Positions 8,993 to 47,256 of a stretch of DNA of 47,256 nt are shown piece by piece (the first letter of the stretch is position 1; each line of letters opens with the position of its first letter). The stretch is from Neoconidiobolus thromboides FSU 785. Taxonomy: Eukaryota > Fungi > Entomophthoromycota. Where the stretch lies: assembly GCA_025603075.1 (NCBI GenBank), contig MU626413.1, positions 1 through 47,256 of the forward strand, read 5' to 3'. The notes beneath the pieces were generated by a model. That model ran no database searches and was not told the origin of the DNA. It was given only the letters and a program-made list of their open reading frames with translations. The translations under genes and the position numbers were made by a program.

Positions 8993-11900
8993 ATGCTTCA
9001 TCAGATCTTAAGGCAGACATTTAAGCGCAATTTAATTAGGGCAACTTTATCTCGCGTCCCTACTCTTTCTTATCCAAAATCTTTGCCTGCCTTACGTGCT
9101 CATCATACACAAGTACCGGCACCAAAAGATGTATTTGCGCCTCTCGATACCTTTGTCAATCGTCATAATGGGTCTGAAGAAGATCAAATAAAAGAAATGC
9201 TATCCGCTTTAGGGGTTGAAAATATAGAAACTTTACTTTATCAAGCTATTCCAGATTCGATCCGTTCTGAAACTCTCTCAAGTATGGATGATGGTTTTAG
9301 TGAATCGGAATTAATTAAACGTATTCGATATATCGCGGATCAAAATCAACTTTACCGTAGTTATATTGGTACTGGATATACTGGTACCATTGTACCAGCT
9401 GTAATTCAAAGAAACATTTTAGAATCTCCTGGATGGTATACTCAATATACCCCTTATCAACCAGAAATCTCTCAAGGTCGATTAGAATCCTTACTTAATT
9501 TTCAAACCATGGTAGCTGACCTTACTGGTTTACCAATTGCCAACGCTTCTTTATTGGACGAAGGCACTGCTGCTGCTGAAGCTATGGCCTTATGCTTCGA
9601 TCATTCAAGAAGTAAGAAAAAGACTTTTGTAGTTGATAAGAATTGCCACCCACAATCAATTGCTTGTATTAAGACCAGAGCTGAAGGTTTTGGTGTTAAC
9701 GTTGTAGAAGTTGATCTTAGTAAAAATGACTGGGAAGCACATCTTGGTGAATTATGTGGTGTTATATTTCAGGTAATCATTTGTTTATTTTTATATTGTG
9801 ACATGTTTATAAATTATTACAGTATCCTAATACTCAAGGAAGTATTATCGATTATAAAAAAATAGTTGATAAAGTTCATGAGGCAGGCGCACAAGCCGTT
9901 TGTGCTACTGATTTATTAGCACTTACTTTACTTACCCCACCATCTGAATTTGGGGTAGATATTGCTTTAGGTAGCTCCCAACGTTTAGGTGTACCAATGG
10001 GTTATGGTGGTCCGCACGCTGCCTTTTTTGCTTGTACTGATATTCATAAGCGCCGTATCCCAGGACGTATTATTGGTGTATCAAAAGATGCCCATGGTAA
10101 TACTGCTTATCGTCTTTCCCTCCAAACTCGTGAACAACATATCAGAAGAGAAAAAGCTACTTCAAATATCTGTACTGCACAAGCTTTATTAGCTAATATG
10201 GCAGCTATGTATGGTGTCTACCATGGTCCAAAAGGATTAAAAGCCATTGCTCAAAGAATACTTAACCTTACAGCTATCCTCTCAGCTGCTTTAACTCAAT
10301 CTGGAATCAAAGTATTAAATGGTACTTTCTTTGATACTCTAACTGTTGAATGTAATGCTAAGGAAGTCATCGAACGTGCTCAAAGTAAAAAGATTAATTT
10401 CCGTCATGTAAGTGATAACGCCGTTGGTGTTACACTTGATGAAACTGTGACTCGTTTAGATTTGCAAGATATTGTTTATTGTTTTACTGGTCATAGTGAA
10501 TCAGATTTGCTTCAAGTTGCTAACTCCATTAACGTTAGTGAAACTCAAGGCTACAAAGTACCTGAGAATTTACAACGTACTACACCTTATATGGAACACC
10601 CAGTTTTTAACTCTTATCATTCTGAAACTGAATTATTACGCTATATTTATCACCTCCAATCAAAGGATCTTTCCCTTGCTAACTCAATGATCTCTTTAGG
10701 ATCTTGTACTATGAAGCTTAATGCTACTACTGAAATGATCCCAGTAACTTGGCCAGAATTTGGTAATATTCATCCATTTGTACCTGAATCTCAAGCAAAG
10801 GGATATAAATTACTTATTGATGAACTTGAAAAAGATTTAGCTCAAATTACTGGTTTTCATTCCGTTTCTCTTCAACCAAATTCTGGCGCTCAAGGTGAAT
10901 ATGCTGGATTAAGAGTAATTAAAGCTTATCATGAATCTCGTGGAGAAGGTCACCGTAATATTTGTTTAATTCCAGTTTCAGCTCATGGTACTAATCCTGC
11001 TTCTGCTGCTATGGCTGGTATGAAAATCATTCCTGTCAAATGTGAAGCCAATGGAAATTTAGATTTAACTGATTTAAAAGCTAAAGTCGAAAAACATTCT
11101 AAGAATTTAGCAGCCATTATGATTACTTATCCATCTACTTTTGGTGTATTTGAAGATGGTATTATTGATATTTGTGAATTAATTCATAAAAATGGTGGTC
11201 AAGTTTATATGGATGGTGCTAATATGAATGCCCAAGTTGGTCTTACATCACCAGGTACTATTGGTGCTGATGTATGTCATCTTAATTTACATAAAACTTT
11301 CTGTATTCCTCACGGTGGAGGTGGTCCAGGCGTTGGTCCAATTGGTGTAGCTAAACATCTTACACCATTTTTACCAGGTCATCCAGCTATTCAAAGTAAA
11401 GCTGAACAAATTGGTCCAATATCAGCTGCTCCATTTGGCTCAGCCTCTATCTTACCTATTTCTTGGGCTTATGTTAAAATGATGGGTGGTGATGGTCTTA
11501 AAAAAGCTACTCAACTTGCTCTTTTAAATGCCAACTATATGGCTAATCGTCTTAAAGAACATTATAAAATATTATATACTAATACTAATGGTAGATGTGC
11601 TCATGAATTTATTATTGATATTCGACCATTTATTCAATCAGCTGGTATTGAAGCTATTGATATTGCCAAGCGTTTACAAGATTATGGTTTCCATTCACCA
11701 ACTATGTCTTGGCCAGTAACTAATACTTTGATGATTGAACCTACTGAATCAGAAAGTAAAAATGAAATGGATCGATTCTGTGATGCATTAATTCAAATTC
11801 GTCAAGAAATTCAATCAATCGAAGATGGGAAATATTCACGTGAAGATAATCCATTAAAGAATGCTCCACATACTATGGATATTTTATTACAAGATAAATG

Positions 11901-12093
11901 GGATAAATCGTATTCTAGAAATGTTGCTGCTTATCCAATGGCTTATTTAAGAAAATCTAAATTTTGGCCAACAGTTTCGAGATTAGATGATACCCTTGGT
12001 GATAAAAATTTGATCTGTTCTTGTCCTCCAATGTCTTCTTATGAAGAATCAACTACTACTACTGAAAAGGAACCTATTTCTGCAACTGCTTAA
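8993..12093 (+). CDS. GCV2: Glycine dehydrogenase (decarboxylating), glycine cleavage P-protein; 2 exons (intron 9773-9822)
   Basis: Mitochondrial-like presequence from ATG 8993. Motifs [23 protein letters not shown] and [15 protein letters not shown]. Removing GTAATC...TTACAG joins VIFQ to YPNTQG...[22 protein letters not shown] motif [18 protein letters not shown] is present. Confidence 0.97.
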
Positions 12094-28920: not shown

Positions 28921-31112
28921 ATTATTAAAAAAACTCATTAGCGAAGTTTGATTTTATATCAAATTTTTACAGTTCTTTAGAGAATATTTTTAATTGTCGT
29001 GGGGACAGGGTAATAAAAAATTTGGAATCTGACTTTAGGTTTTGTTACCCAAACCAGTAAAATTAATACTTAAAGTGATCTTTTATTAGAAGGTTGAGAA
29101 AAATCTTTAGAGTAGAACCAGTAGAAAAAATTTATTGCTGTATTATTTTATTAGATTTTATTTAAGCCGAAATTGAAATGCCATAAAACAAAATGAATTT
29201 TAACAGGCTTGATCACTGCTGTTTATTTTCAAAAGAGCAGAGCTTTCTGCAAATTTAATTAAAACGTGAATAAATATCTGTATTTGCAGAATTCATTTGT
29301 GATGATTTGTTCTATTTTCTATTTATCAAATACAAAATGAAAATCCCAATTCATGCTTAAATTAAATTTATAGATAGCACTGCACTTTTGGAGCTAAAGA
29401 GCTGTTACCCTGTTATCAAGTCAAAATCTTAGGTTAAAATTTATTTGATTTACTTAAGCTCAAATGTGCACTAAGAACTGTTCATTTTATAGCAAAATTC
29501 AGATAAAATTAAGGATTAGGCTCTAAAAATCAAATAAACCAACAACTGACTCTAAAACTATCGCAAATTAGATTATAATAGAGATGCAACAGCTTCAAAG
29601 ACTTCTAGTTAATTAATTTGTAATAATGGTGATGATATTCTAGGCTAATTTTTAGCATAAAATAATAAGAACAAACATTAAGATGTTTCAAACATGAAAT
29701 TAGTTAATAAGTAATGAGTATGAAAACATATAAAACATTTATGTAGAGAATCCATAATTTTTTCATAGTTTCTGTTAATAAAGTGTTACCTATTTTAATA
29801 TATAACTTTCTACATCTATCTTAAATCACAAAGTTAATTAACTACTTTTATCATAAATGATGTATTACATTAAAATAGTCGAAACCCAACTTTATAATAA
29901 TAAATTCCTATTCACCTATATGCTCGTCTTATATAAATAAAACCTTAATGCTGGAAGATATTAATTTTTTTAAGTTAATAAAGCACACGGTTAATAAGCA
30001 TAAATTGAAATAAATACTTTAATATTTTAATTAGGGATTTTGAATTAACTAAAATTTTAATGATTTTAATAGAAAAGTGGGAGCATACAAAATAATTTGA
30101 TATAAAATTTGGGGAAAGTTTGGTTCGCTTATAAATTGAATAGAAAAAGGTGGGGAAGATAGGATTTTCTTAGTAAATGAGGGTATATAATTAATTATAT
30201 GCTAGTTTTATTTATCTATGAGCTAACATATTAATACATCAGCAATACATTGTTGGATTCTTATTAAAAAGAAATATTTAATATCTTGGGTATAAATAAC
30301 TGTTTGATACCAAAAAATAAATCTTAATTCAAAAATCACTCTTTAGGGGATGTGAAAAGTGATTGCATTAAGCTATATTTTATAAAGTTTAGATTCTTTC
30401 TTCAAAAAATGACAAGAATGACTACTGTTGTTATAATTAACTTTTTTAAGTATATAGAAAGAACAAACAAATAACTTATAATTTATATTGGGCAAAAATT
30501 TGAGATTTTTTATCTGACTCTTTTGTATTTAACTGAAATGAACTCAAAACGTTTTAAGTTACCAACATAATTTAACTAAAACTAATTTGCCTAATTACAC
30601 TTGATTCTTTTTACTATTAAAACTAGGTTATAAATATTTTTTTTGGGCTGGGATCTGAGGTAAAAAAATAAACGCTTTATATCCCTTGAATCATGTGTAT
30701 TGTTTTGCTAATCTAGCTAAATAGCCGCCACATAATATGTAAAAGCGATCTTTACATCCCTTTGTTAAAAATAAATTGAATGGAACAATAACCCTGATTG
30801 ATTTCTAATTATTAAGCGAAGTTTTTTAAAATCGACTTAAAGAATATCATAAAGAACTATATAATAATGACTAACATGAGATAATTATTACTTGGTGCCT
30901 TTAACTAAGAGTTATAACTTATCAATTACTCATTAATTGATGTTTAAAGTATTAAATTAATCTTTTAAGCTATTGAGAAAGTCTGTTTAATTAAAATTTT
31001 GTTAACAATAAAGTCACTTTTATTGGTGGAAATTTTGAATAAGAATTACAATGAAAGTAGTAAAATAAATTAATAATAGGGTACAAAGAATAGCCTAGAA
31101 GAGTATAATCGA

Positions 31113-43083: not shown

Positions 43084-46000
43084 ATGAAAAGGACACGTAA
43101 TTTAAGTAATAAGCCAAAATACTCAGGTTTTTTTTCAGATATAAATGACATATTAGATGGAAAAGAAACAAATAATAATAAAAATAAGAGGAGATCATCA
43201 AAGAGGAAAAAAGGTTTATTTAATGGAGATACTAATGAAGACCAGGAGTTACACGAGTCATCGGATAATTCACTAGATATTAAAGAAGATGAGCCTGAAA
43301 TTGAAGACAAATCAGAATCAGAAGACAGCATTATCTCAATACAAAAAAGTAAAAAGATCCCTGAACCTAAAGATAAAAAACAAAAAAAAAGACATTTAAA
43401 AAATGAAATTAAAGAGCGTGCTATCGATGACATTGATATCAATCAAAAGTTGAGCATTAAAGTCAACGATTTAGTGAGCAACAATACAAAGGCAGGTTCT
43501 AATAAAAAAATAAACAATGCTGGTAATTTTTATTTTAAAATTTAAGTTTATCTTATAAGTTTGAAATAGAAGGAAAGGATGAAGTTATAACTAAACCAAT
43601 TCCTATACCTAGTTATAGACCTTTTGATATTTATAACTACCTTAAATTTGATGATCCAGAACTTGAGGACGGGGATTCAAGGGTTATTTTTGTTAGGCCA
43701 AAGAATCATTATCTTAGAGCTAACGGTAATTTCCTTTTCTAATTTATTATTTATGTTTAATGTTTCCAGAATTAATTCCTGAGTCTAAGTTAGCAGTAGA
43801 ATATGACCTTGATCTTGAAGGTAATTTATATTGAAATTAAGTTTTTTATATTTTTATATTTTAAAGATAAGGCATGGTTAGAAGTAATTTGTGAAAAATT
43901 AGAAATCAATACTGAGGTTTTAGATATGGAGGAAATATTTGAATTATTCATGGATAGGATTGAAAAAAACTGGTTTATTCATGTAAGCAAGCTAAGCATT
44001 GATATGACAAACAATAACATCCTTTTAGAGTAAACAAACAGAAAAACAAAATAAATTTCGAACTAGTGAGCTTAATCCAGATACTCCTTGTGAGATTTGT
44101 AAAGAAACTGATTGCGAAAATAGCAACGCTATAATATTCTGTGATGGTTGTGATTTAGCTGTACATCAGGGTACTTATCTTTGTTTTTATAACCTTAATA
44201 CTAATATTCAGATTGTTATGGTGTACCTTACATACCTGAAGGACAATGGCTTTGTAGAAAATGTATAGTTTCTCCTTCCAACCCAGTGGTAATGTTTTTT
44301 AGTTTTTTAAATAGCTGTATTAATAAGAAGACCTGTATTCTTTGCCCTAATGAAGGAGGGGCATTTAAACAAACTGGATTAAATTCTTGGGCTCATGTTT
44401 TATGCGCCATATGGATCCCAGAAGTTTCTTTTGGCAGCAGCGTATACATTGAACCAATCGAAGGTGTCGACACTATTCCCAAAAGTCGATGGAAATTGGT
44501 ATTTTTTTAATTACTATTTTTTTCACAACTAAGTTTTTAGATATGCTATCTGTGTAAACAACGTAAAGGAGCATGTGTGCAATGTTCAGTAAAATCTTGC
44601 TCTGCTTCTTTTCATGTGACATGTGCTTTTTTTGCAAAGTTTACTATGAAATATAAAGTTATGCCAGACTCACTTTCAACAAAACCCTATTGCCATAGAC
44701 ATGTCTCTGTAAGTGCTGTTCGTGTGGTTTGTAATAATATTTAACTTTTCAAAATAGAAAGATAATAAAGACCAAGCTGATATTCAAGAAGTACAAGGGT
44801 ATTTTGCCAAAAAATTCAGTCCTAAGAAAGTTCATAAGAAAGACTCTAAATATGGTAGTTACTTTGTTAAAATAAATATTTGTTTATATTGAATTAAATT
44901 TAAGCAGCAGTATTCAAAACTTCAAGCTCTAAAGCTGCTATTGCTCACCAACAAGCAATTGATCCAAGTCCTGAAATAATATCCATGGACGTATTTCATC
45001 ATATTATCAGTACTGAAACAGAAGTAAAGACTCGAAAAAAAAATCAAATTTTATTAGAAATTTGTAAATATTGGACCCTTAAAAAGGGAGAATATAGGAA
45101 TGTTCCATTTATTAGACGGTTACATTTGGAGGTAGTTTTGATAGTTAGTTATTTAACTTTTATTTAACCTTAAATCAGCCTTGGACAGCTTCTACACCCC
45201 TGCAATCCGAAGAAGAGAAAGTCATTATATACGAAGTAATTATTTATTAATTTAAATTATAAATGATTTAACTTTTAAAGAATTTGGTTAATATTAAAGA
45301 TGGCCTCGAGAAAGTTCAAAAAATTACCTCTTTAATAAGGCAAAGGGAGGCCTACAAGTTAGAGCTGATTAGATATCGATATAATTATTGGGAAAGTTTC
45401 TTATTTCCAATGACAAAATATTTTAGAAGTGTACTCCTAAAACTAATAAGGTAAATTTAGTCTATTTCTAGTAATAATTCTTAACTAATTTTAGTGATGA
45501 TAAAACATTTATATTTACCCAACCCGTGAGTAAAGAACAAGCCCCAGATTATCATAATTACATTAAAAATCCAATGGACTTTGCAACTCTATCCTCTCTT
45601 GTTGATAATCATGAAGTTCGTGACTTGAATACATTTAAAGTAACAGATAATAATTAACTATGTTTCATTTAAACTCATGTTTAGGAAAAACTACTTTTGA
45701 TTTTCTCAAATTGTATGTTCTACAACGATGATAAATCAATCTATTATAAGACAGCTGCCAAATTCAAAAAAAATGCATTGACAATGCTAAGCAACATTCA
45801 AAAAGAAATATCACGCTTAGATATTGATAGTGATACAGGGTTTTTAAATGTTAGGTTTGACACTGAAGCAGCATTTTCAAGCAATAAAATACGTCAAGAT
45901 GAAGAAAGTAATAATGAGCTATCAGAAGAAGACATAGTCATTTCTGGACATGACACTCCTAACTTTAAAGAAACTGATAACGACATATTATATTCTCTTG

Positions 46001-46128
46001 ACACTATTGAAGAAAAATGTAATGCCCAAGCCACCCAATCAGAAAATCAAAATATGGATAAAGTTCCTGAGGAGTTGATTATATCACCAATATCACCACA
46101 AAACGAAATTTCTTTAAATAAAAAGTAA
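43084..46128 (+). CDS. Nto1/BRPF1-like histone acetyltransferase scaffold (EPc-like, PHD-Zn knuckle-PHD, bromodomain), multi-exon
   Basis: [13 protein letters not shown]; [45 protein letters not shown]; [14 protein letters not shown]...[13 protein letters not shown]; bromodomain [21 protein letters not shown]. The exact 3' end is uncertain (a short extra exon is possible). Confidence 0.9.
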
Positions 46129-46401
46129 TTATTTTAATTAATAAGAAAAATTTTAAATTTTTTAAGTGAAACTGATGAGGAGGATTAATTATACCAAAGG
46201 TTGAAATAGTAAAGTCTTGGTGATAAAACAATAGTAAAAATAATAATTTTATATAACTTTTAATTAATAAACACATAAAATTTTAAGTTTAAAATTTAAG
46301 GCTGGGCTAAGGTGTAAAAGTGATTGAAATTTTTATAAATAAAAGTGTAAATGGTTATAGCTCTATAGTATTATAAAATAGATGCTTTTAATTTCAGATA
46401 T

Positions 46402-47256
46402 GGGGCTGTCCTAATTGGTTTCAGAATCTACTTAGAAATTAATCCAAATTTAAAATTTCAAGTTTGTGTCCAATATAACGGTTAAATCTAAAAAGCCTAA
46501 AATTAAATGTCTCTATTTAAAACTTATTTTAATTGTTTCCTTTTCTTAAATAGCTAATTTTCCTAACTATATATTTTGTGTTAGTTCTGTTAGATATTTA
46601 ACAAATATATAATATATAACTATATGATTATATAATTATATAAATACAGTTATTTGACTTTATTTTTTGTTAAAATAAAAATAAAATGCAAACTTTCATA
46701 ACTAAACTTCGAAATGGAATTTTTGAAAATTTCAATACAATAGGGAGGAGTACACAATACAAACATTATAATTCATTTACATCAATTTTAAGAGCTACTT
46801 ATAACAACCCAAGGTTTATGGAATTTTATAATAAAACAAAACAAAGAAAAGATATATTATCAAAGTTTACTATCGATAATAATAAACTTAATCAAGTAAT
46901 GTATAAATTAGTGCTTTAAGGGAAATAGGAAATAAAAATCAGCAAGTAGCGTTATTATCAACTACAGCTTCAGTATATTCTTTTGATGAATGTAAGAGTT
47001 TTGGGTTTAATATAAATAGAAATCAATATGATTATTCAAAAATAAGTAATAATAGTAATAAAATATCAAGATTACAACCTATTATTAAAAATACAAAAAA
47101 AATTAAAGATGACCAAATTGAAACTATCATACAATATTTACTAAATGATTCAACTATTTCATCAAGATTTAATAAAAAAAATAATGATAGTAAATATTCA
47201 TCAGATAATATATATATATTAAATAAAAGTAGAAGAATGATATATAGTAAATATTT
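46402..47256 (+). mobile_element. Left end of a putative autonomous DNA transposon (Sola2-like)
   Basis: ATAT followed by GGGGCTGT (7/8 match to MITE terminus GGGGATGT), 284 bp upstream of a spliced ORF. The right end lies outside the window. Confidence 0.5.
46686..47256 (+). CDS. Putative transposase N-terminus (2 exons, truncated by window end)
   Basis: Exon 1 46686-46895; 47-nt intron GTAATG...AATCAG (46896-46942); exon 2 open for 104 codons to the window end in very AT-rich DNA: QVALLSTTASVYSFDECKSFGFNINRNQYDYSK...IETIIQYLLNDSTISSR...YILNKSRRMIYSKY. Confidence 0.55.

Follow-up and report, generated by a model that had tools for sequence, protein, structure and literature searches.

Positions 46398-47256 of the stretch of DNA analysed here very probably comprise the left ATAT together with the initial 855 bp of a Sola2 transposon of ~2.3 kb with terminal inverted repeats (TIRs), a relic carrying one frameshift, and the MITEs found in the same stretch would be its deletion derivatives. 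This stretch, hereafter the window, corresponds to contig MU626413.1 of assembly GCA_025603075.1 in its full length (Neoconidiobolus thromboides FSU 785; 47,256 bp; 25% G+C). The contig end falls inside the element, so that this copy cannot be extended within GCA_025603075.1. As far as its sequence tells, the feature is a truncated, decayed, high-copy Sola2-type element of a known superfamily of DNA transposons, which Bao and co-workers reportedly described in 2009. The first-pass annotation had gone further, presenting an autonomous master and its MITEs as the two halves of an undescribed fungal cut-and-paste system. Transposon and MITEs do lie together in the window, and this part of the proposal stands. 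To call the system undescribed was an overstatement, Sola2 being a known superfamily, and the window copy, which has a frameshift and stops at the contig end, is a relic rather than a working master.

The position of the left border is supported by several lines of evidence. The sequence ATAT followed by GGGGCTGTCC is present at 46398-46411 as first reported, and homology to other copies begins exactly at 46398/46402. The 12-mer ATATGGGGNTGT occurs eight times in the window against 0.01 occurrences expected, seven of these being MITE ends and the eighth the terminus at 46398. When contigs from public runs were placed on 44500-47256, the summed contig depth, ~30-50 across the neighbouring gene, climbed into the thousands precisely at 46398 (DNA runs X2 and X4), a jump of ~100-fold or more in DNA runs of other strains; such sums of contigs differ from true copy numbers and are taken only to mean many copies. 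Immediately before 46398, mutually unlike flanks were carried by 6 contigs in run X2 and 13 in run X4. The depth jump and the unlike flanks therefore place the left edge of a high-copy repeat at 46398. In addition, a 5.7-kb contig from a public run, identical to the window, stops at 46425.

All features of the element lie on the forward strand. The left 4-bp target-site duplication, ATAT, occupies 46398-46401, and in all 8 copies GGGG is preceded by (T)ATAT or ATAC. We place this ATAT outside the element, as a duplication, because MITE copies carry varied matching 4-mers at their borders. The left TIR of 22 bp, GGGGCTGTCCTAATTGGTTTCA, follows at 46402-46423; homology and the depth jump begin here, and the left and right ends of the family agree at 20 of the 22 positions. 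Beyond this TIR, a search for subterminal repeats found none. The 5' non-coding region of 284 bp (46402-46685) has no ORF and is ~90-95% conserved among the copies compared. From 46686 to 47256 runs the transposase gene, represented by its N-terminal ~190 codons, cut by the contig end and recognised through DNA identity to paralogs that bear the core.

These paralogs were reached by a protein search with the open frame of the window, which returned only short 'hypothetical protein' models of the same genome, and through these models their contigs. Seven further copies were obtained in this way (labelled within L001-L008), and in all of them the homology to the window begins at 46398/46402. The window copy is 90.5-94.9% identical to the paralogs in DNA over its 855 bp; against a rough consensus, the copies reach ~90-95% identity over long matches, with 83% for the L006 fragment. 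Two copies are complete, L001 (9508-12005) and L005 (5520-7883). Both begin with ATAT followed by GGGGTTGTCC...TTGGTTTCA and end in TGAAACCAATTCAGACAACCCC followed by ATAT, so that ATAT flanks them on both sides, and L007 has the same right end. The right end that had been predicted from the window alone, ACAACCCC plus ATAT, is indeed found in these three paralogs, whose inverted terminus ...CAGACAACCCC is followed by ATAT. The inverted ends of the family start with GGGGYTGT, the target duplication is 4 bp, AT-rich and nearly always ATAT, and the size of the element is ~2.3 kb once nested MITEs are subtracted. Among the 8 copies inspected, no intact one was found, all 8 being disrupted by stops, frameshifts or MITEs nested in them; L001, for example, has one MITE at 10648-10746, inside the LDFKQN-M codons, and a second at 11830-11921.

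The copies also exist in two versions at window positions 47174 and 47208, one of which is shorter by 1 nt in a poly-A run and, 34 nt further on, by 2 nt in an AT repeat. Together these indels preserve the frame and recode ~11 residues (NKKNNDSKYSSDNIYI versus SKKIMITNIHQIIYT). Read from the sequences, the two indels resemble a compensated frameshift that would distinguish subfamilies.

The MITE family is represented in the window by at least 8 copies of ~99 bp with the ends GGGGATGT...ACATCCCC and matching 4-bp flanks (ATAT/ATAT, TAAT/TAAT, AAAT/AAAT). We compared the consensus ends of MITE and element in register over positions 9-40, with significance estimated from 5000 shuffles. The 5' ends are identical at 19/32 positions, a value reached by 3/5000 shuffles, and the 3' ends at 24/32, reached by 0/5000. 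The cross pairs gave 15/32 (element 5' against MITE 3') and 17/32 (element 3' against MITE 5'), each reached by ~6% of shuffles. This end-specific likeness, 5' with 5' and 3' with 3', therefore fits an internal-deletion derivative. Thus, the link proposed in the first-pass annotation is reinforced by three properties that MITE and element have in common, namely the 4-bp AT-rich duplication (ATAT), the terminal GGGGNTGT and the end-specific subterminal likeness. Judging from these ends, the Sola2 element family is likely the parent of the ~99-bp MITEs.

One could also argue that the MITEs owe their mobility to another autonomous element, with ends closer to GGGGATGTATTTTT, and that the likeness described above reflects only the common ancestry of two Sola2 families. 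The TIRs of MITE and element differ at 6/22 positions, so that the MITE 3' end agrees with the TIR of the element at only 16/22, and all transposase copies seen are dead. Moreover, other stretches of the window terminated by GGGGATGT, at 30346-30761 and from 36007 onward, have interiors unlike both the 99-bp MITE and the Sola2 element; these may be further non-autonomous relatives. However, the likeness between MITE and element extends in register, end by end, to 40 nt, both use the same target and the same duplication length, and MITEs are found nested in and abutting copies of this very element, while protein searches found no other transposase family with MITE-like ends. We therefore hold a second autonomous family to be unlikely, although it is the rival that deserves some weight.

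In two of the paralogous contigs, a MITE directly abuts the left inverted repeat of the element, with a single ATAT common to both (L001, 9440-9507; L006, about 1040-1060). These loci are unrelated, and the MITE lies in one orientation in one of them and in the opposite orientation in the other. This arrangement suggests insertion into a target site that had been recreated by duplication.

With the Sola2 element as parent, a simple mechanism can be proposed by analogy with DDD/DDE cut-and-paste transposases. The transposase would bind the 22-bp inverted ends and excise the element. Integration at ATAT would then be carried out by its three aspartates through a 4-bp staggered cut, which is repaired into the duplication. 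Each insertion would in this way remake the ATAT target at both borders, and this may be the reason why MITEs abut the element in L001 and L006. The ~99-bp MITEs would be internal-deletion derivatives that retain only the two ends, and they would be mobilised in trans by the Sola2 transposase or by a very close relative.

This relationship resembles the pairs formed by mPing and Ping/Pong (PIF/Harbinger) and by Stowaway and Mariner-like elements, in which a short non-coding element and a transposase element likewise have terminal bases, target and duplication length in common, and in which coding copies are, as here, far fewer than MITE copies. What sets the present pair apart is that it belongs to Sola2, that its ATAT duplication would remake the target at both borders, and that MITEs abut (L001, L006) or nest in the parent element; mobilisation in trans is, for the pair described here, only inferred. 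It is tempting to speculate that an intact compact Sola2 copy (~2.3 kb, ~575 aa) survives in some N. thromboides strain and still moves the MITEs, although we would give this poor odds. In that case, fungi would have their first known active Sola2/MITE pair, and the recreated ATAT sites would seed adjacent and nested insertions. Such a copy, if it exists, would also offer a small Sola2 element suited to transposition assays.

Regarding the coding region, the ORF starts 284 bp inside the element (ATG at 46686), and from 46943 onward the frame stays open until the window ends, as had been described. The two-exon structure that accompanied this description, with an intron at 46896-46942 on the forward strand, was not upheld, as five other copies read through this segment in frame (NQAMYKISALRETGNKNQQV). 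A multiple alignment of six copies reveals that the window copy lacks one A of the run at 46905-46907 and has a private T for C at 46897, which creates the GT of the supposed intron. An extra A after 46904 is seen as a variant in several runs, and an RNA contig (X5 record 22) spans 46880-47256 unspliced. The in-frame reading of the other copies, the two private changes and the unspliced RNA contig therefore point to a single exon with a frameshift, the proposed intron being in reality coding sequence.

Could the window ORF nevertheless be a functional gene of two exons, its frame rescued by splicing of these 47 nt? The segment has GT..AG ends, and its length resembles that of the 42-50-nt introns of the neighbouring gene, which RNA contigs confirm. 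We give this reading very little credence, since the GT is found only in the window copy and the frame problem is the private 1-nt deletion of that copy. Splicing would delete 16 conserved codons, and no joint between 46895 and 46943 is listed in the RNA runs examined, one RNA contig reading straight through.

With a single exon, the stop-free pieces of the different copies tile one ORF of ~575 codons, which begins at the ATG described above and stops ~330 bp short of the right end of the element. The encoded protein contains the motifs RSTFFKYIPS..K...RKTDLCNIC, LDFKQN, SEILNH, IWADTGNHF(K/R)S and FFAEHHGKSxVDGHF. The window copy ends before the core, and the catalytic DDD domain is therefore not visible in the window, as was stated at the outset; the identity of the protein has to be read from the paralogs. 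As references we used the transposases Sola2_DFa-2 (Dictyostelium fasciculatum) and Sola2_PPa-1 (Polysphondylium pallidum) from Additional file 3 of Bao & Jurka 2013 (PMC3627910). L003:5318-5965 matches the 145-aa core of Sola2_DFa-2 with 53/143 identical residues (37%; pairwise E 6e-25, BLASTP), so the downstream part of the element, as read in the paralogs, encodes a transposase and not a host protein.

All three catalytic Asp positions of the paralogs, the D of LDFK, of WAD and of HGKSxVD, align with those of the dictyostelid proteins, where the contexts are MDFK, WSD and HGKSDVD in DFa-2 and CDFK, WCD and HGKSECD in PPa-1. The Glu of FAEHHGK is unconserved, its place being taken by Q in DFa-2 and by P in PPa-1. 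Sola transposases are described as DDD enzymes, and the preservation of three Asp together with a variable Glu therefore fits an enzyme of this kind. The CxxC motif after RSTF(F/Y)K..PS is kept as well, forming a block common to the element and the references (NRTDTCPYC, NRTDMCPMC). The N-terminus present in the window (LLS..(Y)..(K/R)xFG(F/I); K.I..IE) is in register with DFa-2 and PPa-1 in a comparison made by eye only. The Sola2-type reading, already put forward from the N-terminal motif spacing, is thus supported in the full-length paralogs by core homology, the three retained Asp, and the TIRs with their ATAT duplication. The observed duplications are ATAT, AAAT and TAAT, never TTAA, and so do not agree with the TTAA target of piggyBac/Kolobok, superfamilies that likewise duplicate 4 bp.

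Profile and structure-based searches added less. Pfam scans of the window and paralog pieces gave no meaningful match, and the Pfam DUF7869 HMM itself did not match the decayed copies. In the ESM Atlas, the C-terminal piece fell among eukaryotic clusters that partly carry DUF7869 (score 0.95, >200 shared features), and DUF7869 proteins of arthropods, molluscs and oomycetes are, by language-model features, the nearest clusters for the C-terminal half of the core. The model of one top ESM Atlas match has structural neighbours among IS630-type DDE domains. For an RNase H-like fold of the catalytic domain, these ESM Atlas neighbours give indirect support only. The N-terminal piece returned nothing informative from the ESM Atlas, and an AlphaFold2 model of the core, built from a shallow paralog alignment, had a mean pLDDT of 38.6, too poor for fold comparison. 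Word-indexed protein searches, restricted by a length window, returned same-genome gene models only.

For the ORF one might also think of an ordinary or domesticated host gene, with a GGGG terminus that matches by chance or is a solo MITE end, and the lack of a Pfam transposase match for the window pieces would fit this. Virtually no room is left for either reading, however. All 855 bp recur at many loci amid differing flanks, inverted ends and ATAT delimit the copies, and an abundance of stops argues against selection for host function. This multi-copy, TIR-bounded and decayed structure rules out both.

A HMMER search with the 104-aa N-terminal piece recovered only fragments of the family and two weak relatives (E about 1e-4), a Logan contig from SRR18067565 (L009) and an ENA metagenome contig (P0012). 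The former contains a KKTDMCTLC motif in its next ORF. These two relatives therefore point to related Sola2-like elements outside N. thromboides.

Published Sola2 elements have TIRs of 12-22 bp and 4-bp, AT-rich duplications (AWWT; ATAT, AAAT, ATTT) (PMC3627910). The N. thromboides element is alike in both respects, with its short TIRs and its ATAT or AAAT duplications. Its host is an entomophthoralean fungus, whereas the references, DFa-2 and PPa-1, come from dictyostelids, and it is much smaller, with ~2.3 kb and ~575 aa against 10-15 kb and a transposase of >=888 aa. Unlike dictyostelid Sola2, it has no Fanzor passenger gene, and its termini start with GGGG, the ends of the DFa and PPa elements being different. 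Finally, the N. thromboides Sola2 appears to have spawned the very abundant ~99-bp MITE.

In a survey of fungal genomes, Sola2 was recorded only once, in Aspergillus flavus (PMC5751038), and the repeat analysis of N. thromboides gives 13.5% repeats with Sola and MITEs unmentioned (PMC11105155). The element is thus a fungal Sola2 with a compact architecture and abundant MITE offspring, and not a new system. Since Sola2 is almost unrecorded in fungi, it adds one of the rare records from this kingdom for a transposon of a known kind. Naming the parent of the MITE family would account for much of the intergenic repeat content of this genome and for many of its contig breaks. Otherwise, this is routine transposon annotation.

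The annotation of GCA_025603075.1 places at least 12 short 'hypothetical proteins' of 86-310 aa on decayed transposase fragments (P0001-P0010, P0014 and P0015), some of them with invented introns that skip frameshifts. Annotators accordingly have a reason to discard such models.

Within the 47,256-bp window no second copy of the Sola2-type element was found. The upstream neighbour of the element is a PHD/bromodomain gene, whose stop codon lies 213 bp before it. A transcript contig of this gene reaches 25 nt into the transposon, and the element therefore lies in the 3' UTR or just beyond it. The gene also has one further intron, of 42 nt with GT..AG ends, at 46125-46166, which is joined in RNA contigs from 2 runs. 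Its removal takes out the apparent stop at 46126, so that the protein runs on to ...NETDEED and terminates at the stop codon 46186-46188.
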